Positions 3,360 to 63,500 are shown, numbered from the stretch's first letter. The stretch: 64,000 nucleotides of DNA from Ylistrum balloti (GCF_031769215.1 NW_026782379.1:1-64000), one strand, 5' to 3'. Numbers and translations are program-made. The notes: generated by a model not told the origin, from the sequence alone.

Positions 3360-3840
3360 CGTGTCCCATTGGTCAATTTTGTTTACCGGGTCGGGAGGAT
3401 TTGCACCCGGCCTGCAGCAGCAGCAAAGTTCGATAACTCATACGAACAAAACATTGTGGCAAAAGTCATTCAAATATCCAATGATTTCCGCTGGCTGCTC
3501 TTGTTATTTTGTTGAAACCTTGGTTACCAATCGCTAGAGGAAGGTCCAGGCTACCAAAATCCGAGTGATCCCTGTTCGCGGCGAAGTGATATCACGGTAA
3601 AAAAACACTGTTTTGCAAATTTATATTTTTTACAGTGTGATCCCTATACTTTTTCAAAAGAGATCACTCAGTTTCAAAAACTAGACTATATTTCCTAAAT
3701 TTTAAGCCATTAATGGTAAAAATTGGTCCAGTAATAGCCAGCGGATTTAATTCTGAACTTGGCACACTTGTTGACACATAAATCAACATGGCGGCCGAAT
3801 TTTTGGAAACGACTTCACTTCGAACTCCATGCAATGGTAG
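3360..3840 (+). promoter_or_regulatory. Probable ABCD promoter region: CCAAT boxes and YY1-type motif
   Basis: CpG-rich relative to the introns; ATTGG 3368, CCAAT 3478 and 3527; AACATGGCGGCC 3785-3796; possible donor G|GTAGGA at 3836/3837. Confidence 0.45.
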
Positions 3841-4571
3841 GAATTTATATCTTATTACAAAATGATTACCAAAATAGGAAAATATAAGTCTTGAACTTTA
3901 TTTTGATATATTTTTATCCCCCAACTACGCTTATTTGATATTTTAATTTTAGTGTGAAAAACCCGAAAAAATGGGGTTTTTTGCTCCAACAGAACGTAAT
4001 AAGCCTGTAAATGACCGTCGCCGACCTCCCTACTAATGCATAATTACTTACAAACACGACAGAAGTATAGAGGAAATTATTGGATAACTGGTCGACGATA
4101 TTGTTTTCAGGTTTAGTAGCATGACTAGCTACCTACCCATATAAGTTAGGGCCGCAGGCTGTCAGATCTGTCATAATCATACACATGTAATACGTTCCTA
4201 CCTTCCTGCACTGTCAAACGGTTTAATTTATTGTGACTGCGGGCAGGCGTTCCTGTTGAGTGAACATGTTTTCTTTTTAAAGTTTAACTCGACATCATTT
4301 AGTGTAGTAAAAGTGAGTGTGTCTTTGTATGTGATTTTCATTTTACCTTCTGTACTTTTCTTTCATTTGAAAACCGCAGTCGATTCCTCGCACCACCAAC
4401 CCAGTTCATATTTGCCGCTAGGACACTTTTGATGCAGACGACGGAAGTCGGTCAAAGGTCACAAACTCGTTTTGATAAGAAATCCAACATGGATGACAGT
4501 GTTACGAAGTTCAGGAGATGGTGTTGTGTATTTAACGTATATGGCGTGTAAAAGACAGTTGAAGCCTAAAA

Positions 4572-54500: not shown

Positions 54501-57500
54501 CCCCACCTCTAATGTCTAACTTCCATTATATGATTTTCAGTCATTTTCGATGGCATTTCATATACCAGGGTATTGTCCATCAAATACAATGCCCCCATCT
54601 GTTAGCCATCCAATACCCTACCTCCATACTTTGTTGTCTGTCATACATACAAGCTTTCCCATACTGTCCCTGTATTGGCCCTATATGTCTTAACACAGTG
54701 ACTGCCTGGATTATACGCTTATGGCTTCATAATATGTTGCCTTCTGAAGATTATGTTTTTTGCGGCTACAATTGAACATTGTTATGATTAAATGTTAAAT
54801 AGTTTATAAATACTTTAGGAGAAAAATGAGAATACTTTAGGAGAAAAATGAGCTGTTATGATATTTGAATTGGCTGTAAATGTTGTTACTTTTGAGGGTT
54901 TCTTTTTTTCAAGGATGAAATAAGGTCATGGTAAATACATGGTATCTTGAAAAATCATAGATAGTTGAAACCAGAGGCAATTGTTGGCTATTTCCAGACT
55001 TTTGCTGAAAATGCATCCATTTTGCTTCAAGCTTTTTGTAAACATGGGAAAATTTGAGCCATCAAAAACAACTTTTACAGTATGTGAAAGAATAATCCAA
55101 TCTTAATCCCTTGTACTTTTTTTTTAAAGTTTTTGCCCGTTTATATTATGCATGTTGGAATCTATGTTTGCAGTTTGTGTGTTATTGTAATACAATGCTA
55201 AGGTAAAACATAACTCTGATAATGTTTTTACAGAACAAAGTCATTGCATGTAATTTTTGTGTCAACACAGATATTTCGTAAAAACTATTCAACAATTCAG
55301 TCACAACATATAAATTTTATTTAACTTCTGATATAGCTGATATAGGTAGTTTATTTGGTTCTAATGCAGAGATCAATCTAGTATCAGTTACCATATTTGT
55401 TTTTGAATGTCGGTAGTAGCTTATGATGCAGCAGTTTGTCTGTCTGTCTGTCTTTACAGTGTAATGACAATGTCATTTTGATGACTGTATGTACCGAAGC
55501 AAACATTTAGATTTGTGTGGAATCATTTGAATGTTAATTGGAATGATTACTGTTAAAACCATACACAAGATATTAGGTCTGACTGAGTCCGTTGAAATCT
55601 CTGATTGCTTGCTTCTTTACAGGCATTCTCAGTTAACCTTTGATCATCTGCTAACTGCTTGCGTTTTATGACTGGCCAACACGAATCATTTATAAATCCT
55701 CCATTTATAGCATATTGAGAGTCTCAGCCTGATCTGCAAGCTCCCTACATTTGTTGCTTTGCTTCCTGCTGCTTAAGCATAACCAGTTGGTATTGGCAAT
55801 TTTTTCAGGAGCCATCGCCCTTGCTGTTGAAGGTTGTGGATGTGCCCTACTTAGATGGGGATGACTCCCAGGATGGGGACACGGAAACTGCTGATGACAC
55901 GCTCAACGTATCCATGGAGGCAACTCCTGTTCCAGAGAAGCCTCCAAAAAAGGTCAGTCAGGCTTCAGGGTTAGAGGTCATGGTGACAGTTTTATTAATG
56001 GCTGTATAGCAGTTATAACAGTACTGGTAGTTACATTGTGTCACATTCTTGCATAGTATCATACACTGATGTAATATGGAGGTAGACATAGTGCTTCAAG
56101 AGAAAATATCAATATCAGCGTAGCATGCCTTGTGTTCTGTCTGTTTGATGGCTCAATTCAACCAAAATGATGAGTTTTTTAAATGCTCGATGCTCTCATG
56201 TCTACCTCCATTGAAAGATTTGTGTATTGTATGTGTTACACTTCGATCGCTGTTTGATTGAAGGATATGGAAGTCATATCTGTCATCATACAGGACTGTG
56301 GTCAACACACCTTTGTAACACTGGTCAGTACACATGTACCTACACAATATACCAAAGGACATCAGCTATACACATGATCATAAAAAAGAAATTGATGGTT
56401 TTATAATTTATAGTTATTATGAACTCATATCTCATCACTACTGTCTTGTCTCTGGCTTCTGAAATTCTTATATACAATGATGATTGTACCTTAACTGATA
56501 TAGCATGCTACTGTTACATTATACATTAACCAATGTTTTAAAGAATATCGAGAGTGAATATGTACAGAATTCAGCATGTTAATCTTAGTGTGGTAGTATA
56601 AATAAAGTCCTTTGGTATGTTCTGGGTTTGGGATCAGGGTTTTTGTATACTTTATGTTAGATGTAGAATTATCATCAACTGTACACCAGTAGTCTGTATC
56701 ATTTAGATTTATAGTATTCATAACTTATTCTTGTAAATTGTGACATTGAAACTATGATAAAGTTAGTCCTCAAACTACATAGGTGTATATAGATTTGTTT
56801 TGTCATGAAGAGTTTTTCCTGTAACTTACTTAAGTTTTTCTGTGTTTAAGTTATTGCAAAACACAATCTTCAAAGTTATTTCAACATACAAAAATTATCT
56901 TAGGAACTGATTCCTCTAATCTATGGATGTCTATCTCTTTTTTTTTTAGTTTGAAGATTCTCATTCATTATTGTCTATAATTGAAGAAATGTTTTACATA
57001 TTGAAAACAACCAGTGACAGCTTTACCTAATGCTGATAGCCTTTGTCATTTATGTATGACTGTATAACAATAGAAGTAAGCAGGTCATTAACAACAAACA
57101 AGTTATATATATTCATCTAATTATACCAGATAATGTATACTTCAAATGTTTACTAGTTTCATTGCATAAATTTCATTTTATTGAAGATAAATAAGGTTTA
57201 GAAGTCATGGTTATTTATCTTGACAAACACTGTTTCCATAGCAACAGTAACCACCTCCATCTTACACTTTTTAGTTCACACTGGTAACTGTCTGCTTTTT
57301 AGATGTTGTACAATAATTGTAGTACATATGTGTACTTGTTTTTTGCACTTTTATTTTAGACTGAGGATGACCATGGTAAAGAAAAATGCCCCCCGAAAAA
57401 GGTAGATGTTGTTTAGTTAGGCATGGTTGTAAAAATGAAATTCAAAAAATTTTCAAGGAGTTATGCCCCCTTGAGGATTTTTCATCAGTATTTGATGTAC

Positions 57501-60500
57501 ACAATTTATTTCCAGGAGGATTTGGCATCTTGTTGCTATGGTAATGGCTGTTGCAAGAAAAATTATCATCAACTTATTTCATTTTCTTGTACACTTACGT
57601 CAGAAATATTTTACTGGATTGTTTGTAAATATTGATGCCATATTAAATGCAAATGTGCTAGAGATTCCAGTGATGAGTTAGATAAGCAGACAGCCGCCAT
57701 TGTGGCACTGCCATGTCCCTATGTTGTTGTTCATTCCTCGTGTAGTGTACCCTTTTTTGTACTTTATTTTAGAATGAGGATGAGCATCCAAAAGAAAAAG
57801 TTGTCCTGAAAAAGGTAGATTTGTGTAAATAAGTGTAGAAACTGTAGGTGCAGCAATTAACATCACTATAGGTCTCCCTATAAACTTGTGTGCTCTATAT
57901 ATATGTGTGCCCCCACTGAGAAAATGTTCAAGCTAATCACCACTGTCTCTTGTTGCTGGCGGGGTTACTCTGCTTCTCATCAATAGGAACTACTACAGGG
58001 TGCAGATGTTCGTTAAGGCTTGTGCATGGCTAACAACGAGTTGTCAGAGTAGAGGTTTTATTATAACATAGCCGTTATCAATAGCTTTCTGCAGAAAATT
58101 CAGTCAATTTGAATCTTCTTCCTGATAAATACATGTAAATGATTGAAAGGATATTCTGTTTAAAACGTTATGATATGATAACAGTTTTTACTGCCATGTC
58201 TCTGTTTGTCTGACTTTTATAATAGACATACATGTTAGACTTCAGTGGGGCCCATCTGAAACTTACATCCTGCATCCTTCTGTTTTGTGTCAATTAGGCA
58301 TACATGATGCTTTATAGTAGCTATCTAGGTGATATTGATATAAAATGTGCATTCAAATCAACTAGTATACCATGTTTATATATTGACAAGTTATGATTCA
58401 AGACAAGGACCAAACTTTTTGAACTTTCAGAATAAACTTACAGGGGTTTGTTTTCTTATAGTTATTTTATGTATATTGAATTAATGTGACTTGCATGTGA
58501 ATTCTTATAATAGTATAACATACAGTTTTCTGCACCAGTTGTGTTATTTTATGTTCATTCACAAGAAAATTTATGCTGACGCAGTTCTTGTCTTCAACAC
58601 TAATAAGCTGTCTTATTCTGCAGAAGGTAACTCTAGAAACCATTAACATGGTCATATTCTTGAAACTAATTATCTTTTCATACAACTCCTGCATTTTCTC
58701 ATCAACAGAAATATTGTTAAGTAATTTTCCTTGTATCATGATTATCAGAAATATTCTTTGTACATATTACTTTCAAAAATATTCTGTATACCAACGCTTA
58801 AAAGGAGTTTTCAATGATATGTTAGATATTTTGTCGTTTATTATCATTTTGAGTCTTCAAGCCTGTAAGATTTTGCTTTAGATATTTATCAAAGGCTCTA
58901 CACAATTTTAACTGCTCAATAATCTCCTCGTCTTGTTTGACTTTTCTTACTAAGTAACTGCTAATTATAACTTGTGTTTCCTGCAACTCTTCTGTTCTCA
59001 TTTAATCAGTTCCTGGTGTATGGAAATGTATTTGAAAATCTTCAAGTATGAAATTATGCTGCAAATTTAATTGTTTTACTATTTTAGGATTTAATGAAAG
59101 TTTTCTGTTGAAATAAGAACAAATACAAAATTCAAGTTTGTATTTTTTTTCAACCAGAAATCCTATTGAGGGCAGTAACAGGGAAATTGTCAGATCTTTT
59201 AACTTTACAAAAATTGTACTTATTCTGGGTGTATTACTTTAATTTCTTAAAAATTGATCTGAGTTCTTACATATTTAATGATACATAATAGTAAAATGTT
59301 GAAAAATTTATTCCAAACATTGAAAGAACTAACACACATATATACTTGTATAATAGCAAACATACTGTTATTGTTTCATTGTTATGAATTATGTGAATCA
59401 TTTGTGTGGTTCTTTTTTGCAGAATATTAATGTCTGTTGTATTTTCTTTGTTGATAAATTCATGTTTTCTTGCATATTTAGTCCTGATATACATATATAT
59501 ATATATGATATGTATTTTCTTAAAGTCTGCATCACTGTCAAATGTGTCATGTTCCAGCGGTGTGAACACTGGGTTGATGTTGATGATGAACTTTAACATT
59601 TTAGGCTAAGAGCAACATGAAGAGACAAATTAGTGGCTACATAGTATACTCTGGGGAGATCCGCAAACACATTCAACAGGAAAATCCTGACTGTACATTT
59701 GGGGAGATAAGTCGTATAGTGGGACTCAAGGTAACAATGTTGGTGTGACCTCCGCCTCGATGTTGTGGTCTCCAGAGTAGAATATTTGCATGTGCATTGC
59801 ATGACTTTCATATTGTTGCATGCTTTTTGGTAATTTGTAGGAGAAGCCCCGTCGCCACCCAAGTGGTTACATATTGTTTTCCAAAGAAATGCGAAAAGTG
59901 ATCACGCAAGAGGCCCCGTCTACATCTTTTGGAGAAATTAGTCGTTTAGTCGGAGAGAAGGTAATTGAGTCGGAAATATACTGAACAGATTATACCATAC
60001 ATTATTTAGATCTTTTGACTTCAAAATTTCTTCCTCAGTAATTAAGATATTGTAAAAACTGTGCAAAGAAACTTATATTATATCCAAGATATTTAAACGC
60101 TAAGTGTCATCAGACCTTTCTAAAGTAGGTATTTACTAAAGAAGTCAGTTTTTATTTAAAATTGGACACTTTTTTCCTAGAAGAAAATTGTCCACATCAT
60201 TAGATTTTATAGTTTACCCATTTAAAATTAAAAAAAAAAAAAAAAAAAAAGTAGATCCTAACAATTTAGTAAATTGAAGATATGAAATTTTCATGTTAAA
60301 TAGTGCGTGTAGAGTTCCAAATCAGTTAATGTTTCACAGGATTAAGTATAAGGTAACAACATTGTTAATGATTCTGGTATCTTGTCATACCCAGACAATT
60401 ACAGGATCATTCACATTCTGTATGTGTAAACAATGTGGCATTTTATACTTCAGCAATTTTTTATTTGATTTTTAGGGTACATATATATGAATTATTTAGA

Positions 60501-63500
60501 ATATTGAATGAATTTCAGTAGAGTGGTGGAAACTGTTAGATAGTGTTCAGATTAATGATGTTGGACAATACTTGAATGCTCTGCTATTTTTTCTCGCTGT
60601 CTCACATCCTAAGAATGCCCTCTTTATATTTTCTGTCATCAGTCACGCTACAAAACAAGCTTTCGTTTACCTGGTGTTGTGAGTGTATAATCGTTCTTTT
60701 GAATTTCAGAATTAAATAAATTCATTTCTTTCAAAGAGTTTTTGATTTTAGTCCTACATTTGAACTGTTGATTTGCTTGATGATGGTTTTATTCTGGGAG
60801 GTTCCTTTCCATTTTTTTTTTTTTTTTTTTGTGAATGCTTTATATGTATATATAAATAGATTGTTTGATCACTTCACCTAAATGTTGTATGTTGTGGATG
60901 TTGTACCTCACCAAGTATATGTTGTAGCTGACAGAATGAATGTTGTAAAATATTGTAATGTGGCGTCAAACGTTTTATGTTGTTGAATGATTTTGGATCA
61001 TTTATGCATGAAGAGAATTACTTGATGAAATAAGAAAACAGAATGAAGATCCTTATTGATTGATTATGGTACTGGATTGTTCAACATATATTGAATATTG
61101 ATGGAGAACATGCATGCAAGATGAATATCTGTTGTCTTTTACTAATGTAAGGGTTAGAGGTTGTTTGCCTACTTTATTGTAACAAATGCATCTTCTGGTA
61201 AGATATATACTGTCGGTAGGTATACTGTACTTCGTGTTTGATCACCAATTTACACTTAGTAATAATTTAACAAAGGCTACTTTCACCATAAATACAACAC
61301 TGTGCATAATGACTTTCAAAAAATAAAATATGAAGAAATCACTATGAAACTAGCAAGACATTCAGAAGAATGAACTTTGTTAAGGTTATATTACTAGACT
61401 GATCAGCTACCTCTGTTTCCCTGAATACAAGATCACATTATACATGTAAAATGAAAGTAGAAGAATTTTGTACATGTAATATTTAATTGTTACACACTTT
61501 CTGATCAGATTTTTGAATATCTGATAAACAAATTAGAAATAAGTACAAACATGTCTTTATTCAAGTTGTTTTTCCTGAAGAGTAATATTTTATAGAAATC
61601 ATTCTAGTGACTGGATTATGAAGGGGATTTTATAACAGTGATGGTGGTAGAATACTTACACTTGCATGGATAAATCATGGGGGGATGCCATATTAGGATT
61701 AAGGGTTTATCAGTATCAGAGCTTGCCGGTGATTGAAAGCAATGGTACCAGCGCTATATATGGTGAACGGTCATGCTCTGTTGGCCGTAACATATTTACT
61801 ACTGGTAGTATAGTGGCTTATCTAGATACCTCTATCTGCATGCCAGTTAAATTGCATGTATTTATGCATTTCGGATAACTTTATATAATGTTTTGTTGTC
61901 AAAATTTTTGAATCTTTTGACTTCATGCAGTTGATATATTTCTGCAACTTTTTTTCTTTTGAAAAATGACAGTCTTAAGATTACATGAATAAATTCCCTT
62001 TTCAAATAGTGAAGCATGTTGACGTTTTGTGTTCTATTTTTATCTGTCAGCATGAACAATATTTGATGGCTCACATCATCAGTCTGGCATTAGTATTCAA
62101 GAAAGATGATTAGAATGGATAACAAAACAAGTTCATAATGTATCAACTTGATATTTGCAGACCATCATGATAAAATGTCTGGTAAATCTTTTTATTTGAT
62201 AGGTGATGTTTGAATAGGTTTTGGCATGTTTGGAAAGAAAGTCAGAATTGTTTTTTCTTATTATTATTTATTTTTCTAAACTTAATACAGTTTATATTAG
62301 TCTTTCATTATACATGAAGTTGTTTTGATATTTAGTAAATGATGTCGAATTTTGATGTTGTTTGGTATTCCTTTAGTGGAGGAATTTATCAAAAGAGGAA
62401 AAAGAAAAATATGAGGAAAAAGCAAAGAAAGTAGCAGAAGAGCAACAAGCAAAACAGCAAGAAGCAGAACGAGCCTTCAATGAATCTCTAAATCGCTCTC
62501 AGAGTCCCTGGGATGGGGGACGGGCTTCACCAGGATCTTCAAGTCGACCTATCACTCCAGGAGGTAAGTAGCATGTCCCTGGAACAAGGGATGATCTTCA
62601 GACTCGTCAATGTATCACCCAGAAGGTAGGTCACAGCTCTTTGTGTTTAATGCAGATGTCTCTCAGGTGCAGAATACATTTTAGTTGATAGATCACTAAG
62701 ATAACTTCCCTTGTATAACTTCTGCGGTGTTGGACTGTCAAGATTGCCCGGAGTCTTTTCATCATCTATCTGTAACAAGGTACCAAAGTTGATGTACTTT
62801 GTTTCTATAGTACCAGAGCTGCTGCAGCATTAGCCTCTTTCTGTACAGGACTAGTTAATGTTGAGTCCCTTCACCATAGTTAAAAGAACTGTGGATTATC
62901 ACTGTACCAGGTAGATTCAACCATGTAACCTGGTGTCAAAGTGTGGAGCACAGAATTGTTGGGTCACCAAGGGAGCACTTCTGACCTGATATATAGCTAC
63001 CTAGCTGGTGGTGGTATGCTTCAGTTCAAATTATATTTTTCTTTGCATAACTTATTTATACTTAAGTAGCTGGTGATGGTAACATATACAGAGTAGCTTC
63101 CCCTTATCCTATGATTTTTTTTTTTTTTTGTCATTTTTTTTTTTCTTTTTGTTACATGTACAATGTACTTTGTATTTTGTTGTTAGTTTGCACTCTGCTT
63201 TTAGATTTAATTATTGTAGCAGAGCTTTTCACTTTACATTCTTTAAAATCAATATTTCATTTGTCTTATGTTACATTATTTTAGCCCAGTGATAACCTTC
63301 TTTCACTCTGATGCTCTCATGGCTGAATGTTAAATTTTGCTGTACTATGTGCTTGAAATTAATTCATCTTTAATTTATTGCTTTGGTAAATCTCCCAAAT
63401 AGTTTGTTTTGTTGTGAAGAATAAGTACCTACCAATAGGTTATTTAGATCTCCAACATAAAATAATGGACTCAAAGAATAAATTTCATTAATTACAAGAA

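Follow-up and report, generated by a model that had tools for sequence, protein, structure and literature searches.

The stretch of Ylistrum balloti DNA described here, 64,000 nucleotides in length (GCF_031769215.1, NW_026782379.1:1-64000; hereafter 'the window'), contains most of the gene for polybromo-1 (PBRM1), within which the exon encoding the first half of the HMG box is present as two tandem, diverged copies. The gene occupies the + strand from approximately 24.4 kb as far as the window extends. RefSeq polybromo-1-like proteins, compared with the window by tblastn, tile it exon by exon between 24472 and 63883, with exon cores that are 100% identical to the RefSeq Y. balloti polybromo-1-like isoforms X1 and X2, and two of the exons have Pfam BAH matches. 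The best matches being to polybromo-1, similarity identifies the gene as the PBRM1 orthologue. The duplicated half-box and its partner are arranged as follows:

Exon A, 59605-59730, + strand: 126 nt, 42 codons, phase 0, boundaries tttag/G...AAG/gtaaca; encodes the N-terminal strand, helix I and most of helix II of the HMG box.
A-B intron, 59731-59840, + strand: 110 nt, conserved at an exon-like level.
Exon B, 59841-59960, + strand: 120 nt, 40 codons, phase 0, boundaries ttgtag/G...AAG/gtaatt; encodes a paralogous, faster-evolving version of the half-box in exon A.
Shared exon, 62377-62563, + strand: the end of helix II (WRNL), helix III and then a linker; present in a single copy.

Exons A and B each match within positions 1-38 of the 69-position Pfam HMG_box profile (PF00505), A over 2-36 and B over 1-38, with E values of ~1e-7 (1.1e-7 for B), and the shared exon matches positions 39-64, such that either copy, when joined to the shared exon, spans a three-helix box; sequence matches to this box in the PDB include HMGB1, Abf2 and human PBRM1. 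Exon A is 100% identical to RefSeq Ylistrum isoform X1 and exon B to isoform X2, and the junctions of both agree exactly with the RefSeq models. The two are homologous and adjacent and, being of similar length (126 and 120 nt) and both running from phase 0 to phase 0, can be interchanged in frame. No third copy of the half-box was found in the whole 64 kb window by tblastn with a RefSeq protein query, which recovered only A and B. An earlier note on this DNA, made from the sequence alone, had described consecutive phase-0 exons with canonical splice sites, 110 nt apart, encoding the same HMG segment with 22 of 36 residues identical; the GT-AG boundaries, the common profile positions and the peptides themselves, which are identical at 22 of 37 residues over the codon-aligned core, all bear this description out. 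The same note had placed helix III at 62377, once only. The single copy stands, but the exon found there begins within helix II, at its conserved Trp: helix II crosses the junction when secondary structure is assigned by DSSP to an AlphaFold2 model, and alignment with HMGB1 is concordant.

Nucleotide identity between A and B is 55% (61/111), partitioned across the first, second and third codon positions as 24/37, 27/37 and 10/37. With so few third positions in common, the synonymous sites separating the copies are saturated, while dN, the number of non-synonymous substitutions per site, is ~0.40. Each copy is likewise constrained when compared with its own orthologues from scallop, mussel, oyster and another bivalve, among which A retains 30-36 of 42 identical residues and B 22-27 of 40, with the first and second codon positions conserved far above the third in both cases. 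At closer range, Ylistrum and Pecten maximus are distinguished by five synonymous and no non-synonymous differences in exon A and by one synonymous and no non-synonymous difference in exon B, and the B peptide is invariant in four scallop genera (Ylistrum, Pecten, Mizuhopecten and Argopecten). On the evidence of these comparisons, A and B are both under purifying selection, with A the conservative copy, nearest to the single exon of other molluscs. The claims that nucleotide divergence far exceeds amino acid divergence, and that selection has acted on both copies, had been made in the earlier note and are upheld by the codon position pattern and by the exclusively synonymous changes between Ylistrum and Pecten.

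The A-then-B order was found in five further bivalve loci, in which A is 126 nt and B 120-123 nt long and the intervening intron varies in length:

L001, Mytilus galloprovincialis: A-B intron of 192 nt.
L004, a bivalve locus from a metagenome: A-B intron of 736 nt.
L006, a Crassostrea virginica-like oyster contig: A-B intron of 447 nt.
L007, Pecten maximus: A-B intron of 107 nt.
L008, a bivalve RNA contig (Logan, SRR27896755_4077): A-B intron of 83 nt.

Both half-box types are also present in proteins from Pinctada, Saccostrea and Ostrea. The gastropod, cephalopod, chiton and nemertean models seen have one half-box type, which is A-like, and the fish PBRM1 models seen also have one type; the Lottia gigantea contig has a single half-box exon, a second copy being absent both from the intron of 942 nt that precedes the shared exon and from the rest of its 9.5 kb. 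When 27 half-box peptides are placed in a maximum-likelihood tree, all six B exons from pteriomorphs fall into one clade, on a long stem (support 99/97), which implies a single duplication predating the split between scallops, mussels and oysters; the tree is based on only 42 columns, and most of its other nodes are unresolved. The duplication is a bivalve feature, not one general among invertebrates. Within the bivalves, comparison of proteins from two unionids, Potamilus and Sinanodonta, shows 16 differences among the 41 residues of the half-box exon, against flanks that are ~97% identical, which suggests from protein sequence that unionids also have the exon pair, the Potamilus copy not being placed by the tree (grouping with B, approximately unbiased test p 0.40). 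An A-type exon is present in Solemya, and no heterodont clam sequences turned up among the search matches. The proposed history starts with a tandem duplication of the exon for the front HMG half-box in an early bivalve, prior to the divergence of scallops, mussels, oysters and pearl oysters; A would then have stayed near the ancestral sequence, and B would have changed fast early and been conserved since.

Additional HMG sequences in PBRM1 were also encountered in other phyla. The stick insect Timema podura (CAJPIN010034168.1) has its own tandem duplication of the half-box exon, at 3828-3950 and 3995-4117, upstream of a shared exon at 4249. The copies are 123 nt each, with 73% nucleotide identity and 26 of 41 amino acids in common, and they group together in the tree (100/100), making the duplication independent of the bivalve one. 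The intron between them, of 44 nt, is probably too short to splice and would force either/or use. The nemertean Tubulanus polymorphus has come by two HMG surfaces in PBRM1 in another way: its polybromo-1-like protein (P0151 / P0006) carries a second complete HMG box ~200 residues downstream, at residues ~1590-1660.

Exon use was judged from annotated isoforms (RefSeq/Gnomon and Ensembl) and assembled RNA contigs, with gene models being the only source for Ylistrum. Among the 15 RefSeq models seen for Ylistrum, 13 contain A alone (including X1, X3-6, X9, X10 and X12-15), two contain B alone (X2 and X7) and none contains both. All 11 Mizuhopecten models seen likewise have exactly one of the two exons, as does each of the ~18 RefSeq or curated models seen for Mytilus californianus, M. 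trossulus, M. edulis and M. galloprovincialis, the single case of co-inclusion in Mytilus being an old partial prediction (P0003). The Argopecten models seen are B-only. In Crassostrea gigas, A-only forms are annotated in RefSeq and B-only forms in Ensembl, and C. virginica has RefSeq models of both kinds. Assembled RNA provides further instances: A is spliced to the shared exon in a 991-nt oyster contig (P0236) and in a contig from another bivalve (P0300), and a mytilid contig of 5374 nt (P0266) represents a full-length B-only mRNA. Each exon has therefore been found joined, on its own, to the common flanking exons in both RefSeq models and RNA contigs.

The short intron between the exons is itself highly conserved, with 92.7% identity between Ylistrum and P. 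maximus, compared with ~55-65% in the neighbouring intron. It contains three TGCATG motifs, at 59787, 59798 and 59817, which start 52, 41 and 22 nt upstream of the B acceptor. Measured from the splice sites, they occupy 58-93 nt past the donor of A and 17-54 nt before the acceptor of B, on either side of the likely branch point of exon B. Across the + strand of the window the motif has a density of 0.48 per kb, from which ~0.05 occurrences would be expected in 110 nt, as against the three present. The three-motif layout upstream of B is kept in Pecten and, at -51, -40 and -22, in the metagenomic locus L004; the RNA contig L008 has motifs at -50, -43 (GCATG only) and -24, and the oyster-like L006 has two, at -54 and -37. 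UGCAUG is the binding element of Rbfox proteins, and the motif here has the attributes of an Rbfox-type element in being above chance near an exon and conserved in position across species.

The reading favoured here, which we hold with a probability of roughly 0.7, is that the half-box exon of PBRM1 was duplicated in an early bivalve and that the copies have been kept as alternatives, used mostly on an either/or basis, probably by means of the UGCAUG cluster. The exons, their age, the purifying selection on them, the either/or gene models and the conservation of motif and intron are established. A number of observations nevertheless weigh against this reading. In P. maximus, models with A alone (X15) and B alone (X13) are accompanied by five with both (X1, X2, X3, X5 and X8); Gnomon models with both exons also exist for C. 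gigas and C. virginica, and for Saccostrea, Ostrea and Pinctada the one model seen in each case is of this kind. Two C. gigas models (X20 and X21) lack A and B altogether, such that oyster models overall include A-only, B-only, A+B and neither. In the RNA contig L008 (positions 1-330), A is followed by the A-B intron, which is 83 nt long, contains its TGCATG motifs and is still unspliced, and then by B, already joined to the shared and downstream exons; this retention means that B-containing RNAs are not always cleanly either/or, and it suggests late or inefficient removal of the A-B intron. Two more contigs of the same cluster, in which the open reading frame begins at the same internal Met, probably share the A-intron-B form. 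In Mytilus, the two TGCATG motifs are found 43-50 nt downstream of A and not beside B, and a B-linked microexon, described below, would if neural sit awkwardly with repression of B by Rbfox. Mutual exclusion looks leaky in some lineages, and the earlier note, to which the exons looked mutually exclusive, overstates it in its strict form; both exons occur together in models from P. maximus, oysters and Pinctada and are both skipped in models from C. gigas. The interpretation is largely right for Ylistrum at the level of gene models, where A-only and B-only forms are annotated and co-inclusion is absent.

Leakiness of this sort might also arise if A and B were independent cassette exons, all four outcomes being made and the either/or pattern reflecting sampling by annotation pipelines. 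The modelling of all four combinations in oysters and of co-inclusion in P. maximus fits such an arrangement, as do the lengths of the exons, which being multiples of 3 nt allow co-included or double-skipped mRNAs to escape removal, and that of the 110-nt intron, which is long enough for splicing. It is countered by the presence of exactly one of the two in 15 Ylistrum, 11 Mizuhopecten and ~18 Mytilus models, by the placement of a single conserved motif cluster where it could act on both exons together, and by the retention, rather than splicing, of the A-B intron in L008, the sole RNA contig holding both; independence of the exons appears unlikely. Were co-inclusion instead the normal state, PBRM1 would have one and a half HMG boxes and the single-exon forms would be minor. 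The longest RefSeq isoforms of P. maximus, C. gigas and C. virginica are indeed of this type, as is the only model seen for each of Saccostrea, Ostrea and Pinctada, but Gnomon isoform numbers follow length and not abundance, which counts against taking these as the normal form. Moreover, no such product is found among the models seen for Ylistrum, Mizuhopecten, Argopecten (where B-only was seen) or RefSeq Mytilus, all of the older C. gigas models seen contain A alone, and the A half of the product is predicted by AlphaFold2 with low confidence and without a helix III partner; we judge it very improbable that co-inclusion is the rule. The earlier note had allowed that the duplication might be an artefact of assembly, or that one copy might prove to have decayed in relatives. 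Both were checked and are excluded, the tandem pair being intact in other bivalves: the two copies are found in the same order in further genomic loci and in one RNA contig, their nucleotide identity of only 55% excludes an assembly duplicate, and RefSeq models and RNA contigs alike make use of each exon. Nor does B resemble a pseudo-exon, its peptide being unchanged in four scallop genera and its sole Ylistrum-Pecten difference synonymous.

If A and B are alternatives, as favoured here, their exclusivity is regulatory rather than structural, co-inclusion keeping the reading frame. Steric hindrance is excluded as the enforcer by an A-B intron of 110 nt, long enough for splicing, and nonsense-mediated decay of wrong products by the lengths of both exons, which are multiples of 3 nt; incompatibility between U2 and U12 splice sites does not apply, with GT-AG at both exons. 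Competing RNA structures were also rejected. Shuffled sequences fold as well as the A-B intron taken together with its flanks (z of +0.8 in Ylistrum and +0.9 in Pecten), and the best inverted repeat at the 3' splice site of A (57921/59581) goes from -9.8 to -4.3 kcal/mol in Pecten without compensatory change.

The choice between A and B is instead probably set by the UGCAUG cluster near the branch point of exon B. We infer that Rbfox is the factor, and the direction of the switch is deduced from the Rbfox position rule only. The cluster would then serve as a one-element toggle: a bound factor would block the branch-point region of B and, since in the short scallop intron the cluster lies <100 nt downstream of A, would promote A according to the position rule, while in the absence of the factor B would win owing to the weak polypyrimidine tract of A. 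A precedent for the repressive arm is found in Caenorhabditis elegans, in which RBFOX proteins repress exon 5B of egl-15 through UGCAUG in the upstream intron (PMC3585155).

In most mRNAs, one copy or the other would accordingly be spliced to the shared exon, and the PBAF complex would receive one of two HMG boxes. The boxes have in common the SGYI wedge region, including an Ile at the wedge position, the FGEISR sequence in helix II, and helix III from the shared exon. Differences are found at many residues of helix I, the loop and helix II: for instance, helix I has VYSG in A and LFSK in B, and the loop has PDC in A and PST in B. The N-terminal basic strand is RQIS in A and RRHPS in B, the Pro being lost in A and kept in B and in outgroups. 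By inference, the two boxes may bind DNA differently. In an AlphaFold2 model of the co-inclusion product from Pecten, based on six aligned sequences, B with the shared exon forms a confident HMG box (predicted local distance difference test score, pLDDT, of 90-94) and the A half appears as two low-confidence helices (pLDDT 39-67), such that only B is predicted to form a box when both are present. The HMG domain of PBRM1 is unresolved in the cryo-electron microscopy structure of PBAF bound to a nucleosome, where it was only proposed as a possible contact to exiting DNA (PMC9741621).

The intron between exon B and the shared exon contains a further small exon:

Microexon, 60643-60678, + strand: 36 nt, phase 0, SRYKTSFRLPGV, boundaries cag/.../gtgagt.

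Its sequence would add 12 residues to helix II, immediately before the conserved Trp. The microexon and its flanks are conserved in P. maximus, and in the RefSeq models of Mizuhopecten and Argopecten it occurs only in B-type isoforms; it was not seen among the Ylistrum models listed. An AlphaFold2 model of B with the microexon was of low confidence (predicted template modelling score of 0.38; pLDDT of ~55 for the insert), and no conclusion was drawn from it.

Directly upstream of the HMG exons are two paralogous 42-nt mini-exons, at 57360-57401 (TEDDHGKEKCPPKK) and 57773-57814 (NEDEHPKEKVVLKK). RefSeq isoforms of Ylistrum include both, either or neither of these, which accordingly behave like independent cassettes and not like a mutually exclusive pair. 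A candidate 15-nt microexon at 58431-58445 (NKLTG; ttcag/.../gtttgt) is located inside a conserved intron island, and its peptide agrees with a five-residue insert between the second mini-exon and A or B in isoforms of Pecten, Mizuhopecten and Argopecten. Upstream of PBRM1, the + strand between 4572 and 13482 contains open reading frame fragments, among them an exon for a transmembrane domain, another for the C-terminus and a Walker A motif (GPNGCGKS); read from these frames alone, they look like an ABC transporter, which we guess to be a peroxisomal half-transporter of the ABCD type.

In its general plan, the Ylistrum gene resembles the single-box PBRM1 of other molluscs and of vertebrates, having its six bromodomains, its two BAH domains and its HMG box in the same order, and an exon boundary placed likewise behind the Gly-x-Lys in helix II. 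Exon A is near in sequence to gastropod and cephalopod PBRM1, the models of which show a single half-box type. Sterically enforced mutual exclusion is exemplified by exons 2 and 3 of alpha-tropomyosin; such exclusion is plausible for Timema podura, with its 44-nt intron, and inapplicable to the bivalves, in which the corresponding introns are 83-736 nt long. Closer parallels are the RBFOX-regulated mutually exclusive pairs of C. elegans, exons 5A and 5B of egl-15 and exons 7a and 7b of unc-32 (PMC3585155). These similarly comprise adjacent homologous alternative exons, with a conserved intronic stretch containing UGCAUG beside one of the two and a flanking intron conserved between species. In egl-15 and unc-32 it is UGCAUG that decides the choice, with an upstream position repressing, whereas for PBRM1 the factor and its effect are those proposed above. 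The nematode genes also encode a receptor and a pump, unlike PBRM1, a chromatin-remodeller subunit, and PBRM1 differs in having three motifs around the presumed branch point and in the apparent leakiness of its exclusivity in some relatives.

Tandem duplicated exon substitutions have been catalogued for human and fly (PMC9741552, PMC8373072). The bivalve pair shares with these an ancient tandem duplication, a common phase, similar exon lengths, purifying selection, and the retention of core residues with change at the surface. Convergent duplications across phyla are noted there too, as with PBRM1 in bivalves and a stick insect. By contrast, ion channels, transporters and cytoskeletal proteins make up the bulk of the catalogues, and the PBRM1 event is restricted to bivalves, besides the separate one in the stick insect; PBRM1 is absent from the main text of PMC9741552. 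In the literature on mutually exclusive exons or HMG splicing in PBRM1/polybromo, no paper on the A and B exons was found, which agrees with the earlier note having known of no description, although the isoforms already exist as unremarked RefSeq predictions. The pair is apparently an undescribed case of tandem-duplicated alternative exons.

The A/B pair changes no general concept. Substitution of homologous exons is uncommon and, where it occurs, is usually the sign of a tissue-specific change of functional importance, the known instances being mostly channels, transporters and muscle or cytoskeletal proteins. In bivalve PBRM1, the exchanged piece is the DNA-contacting half of the protein's only HMG box, the role of which in PBAF is poorly defined. 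A natural pair of HMG variants, kept throughout pteriomorph history and arisen again in an insect, offers a ready-made comparison for the function of this domain, and an intron of 83-110 nt with three UGCAUG motifs provides a compact, deeply conserved system for the study of Rbfox-type regulation in molluscs. More tentatively, the old Rbfox-type element, the helix II microexon linked to B and the recurrence in a stick insect may together point to a tissue-specific HMG switch in bivalve PBAF and to selection for two flavours of PBRM1, a possibility we consider rather less than even. If it were true, bivalves would possess a layer of remodeller targeting unknown in vertebrates, governed by an Rbfox-type element conserved for several hundred million years.

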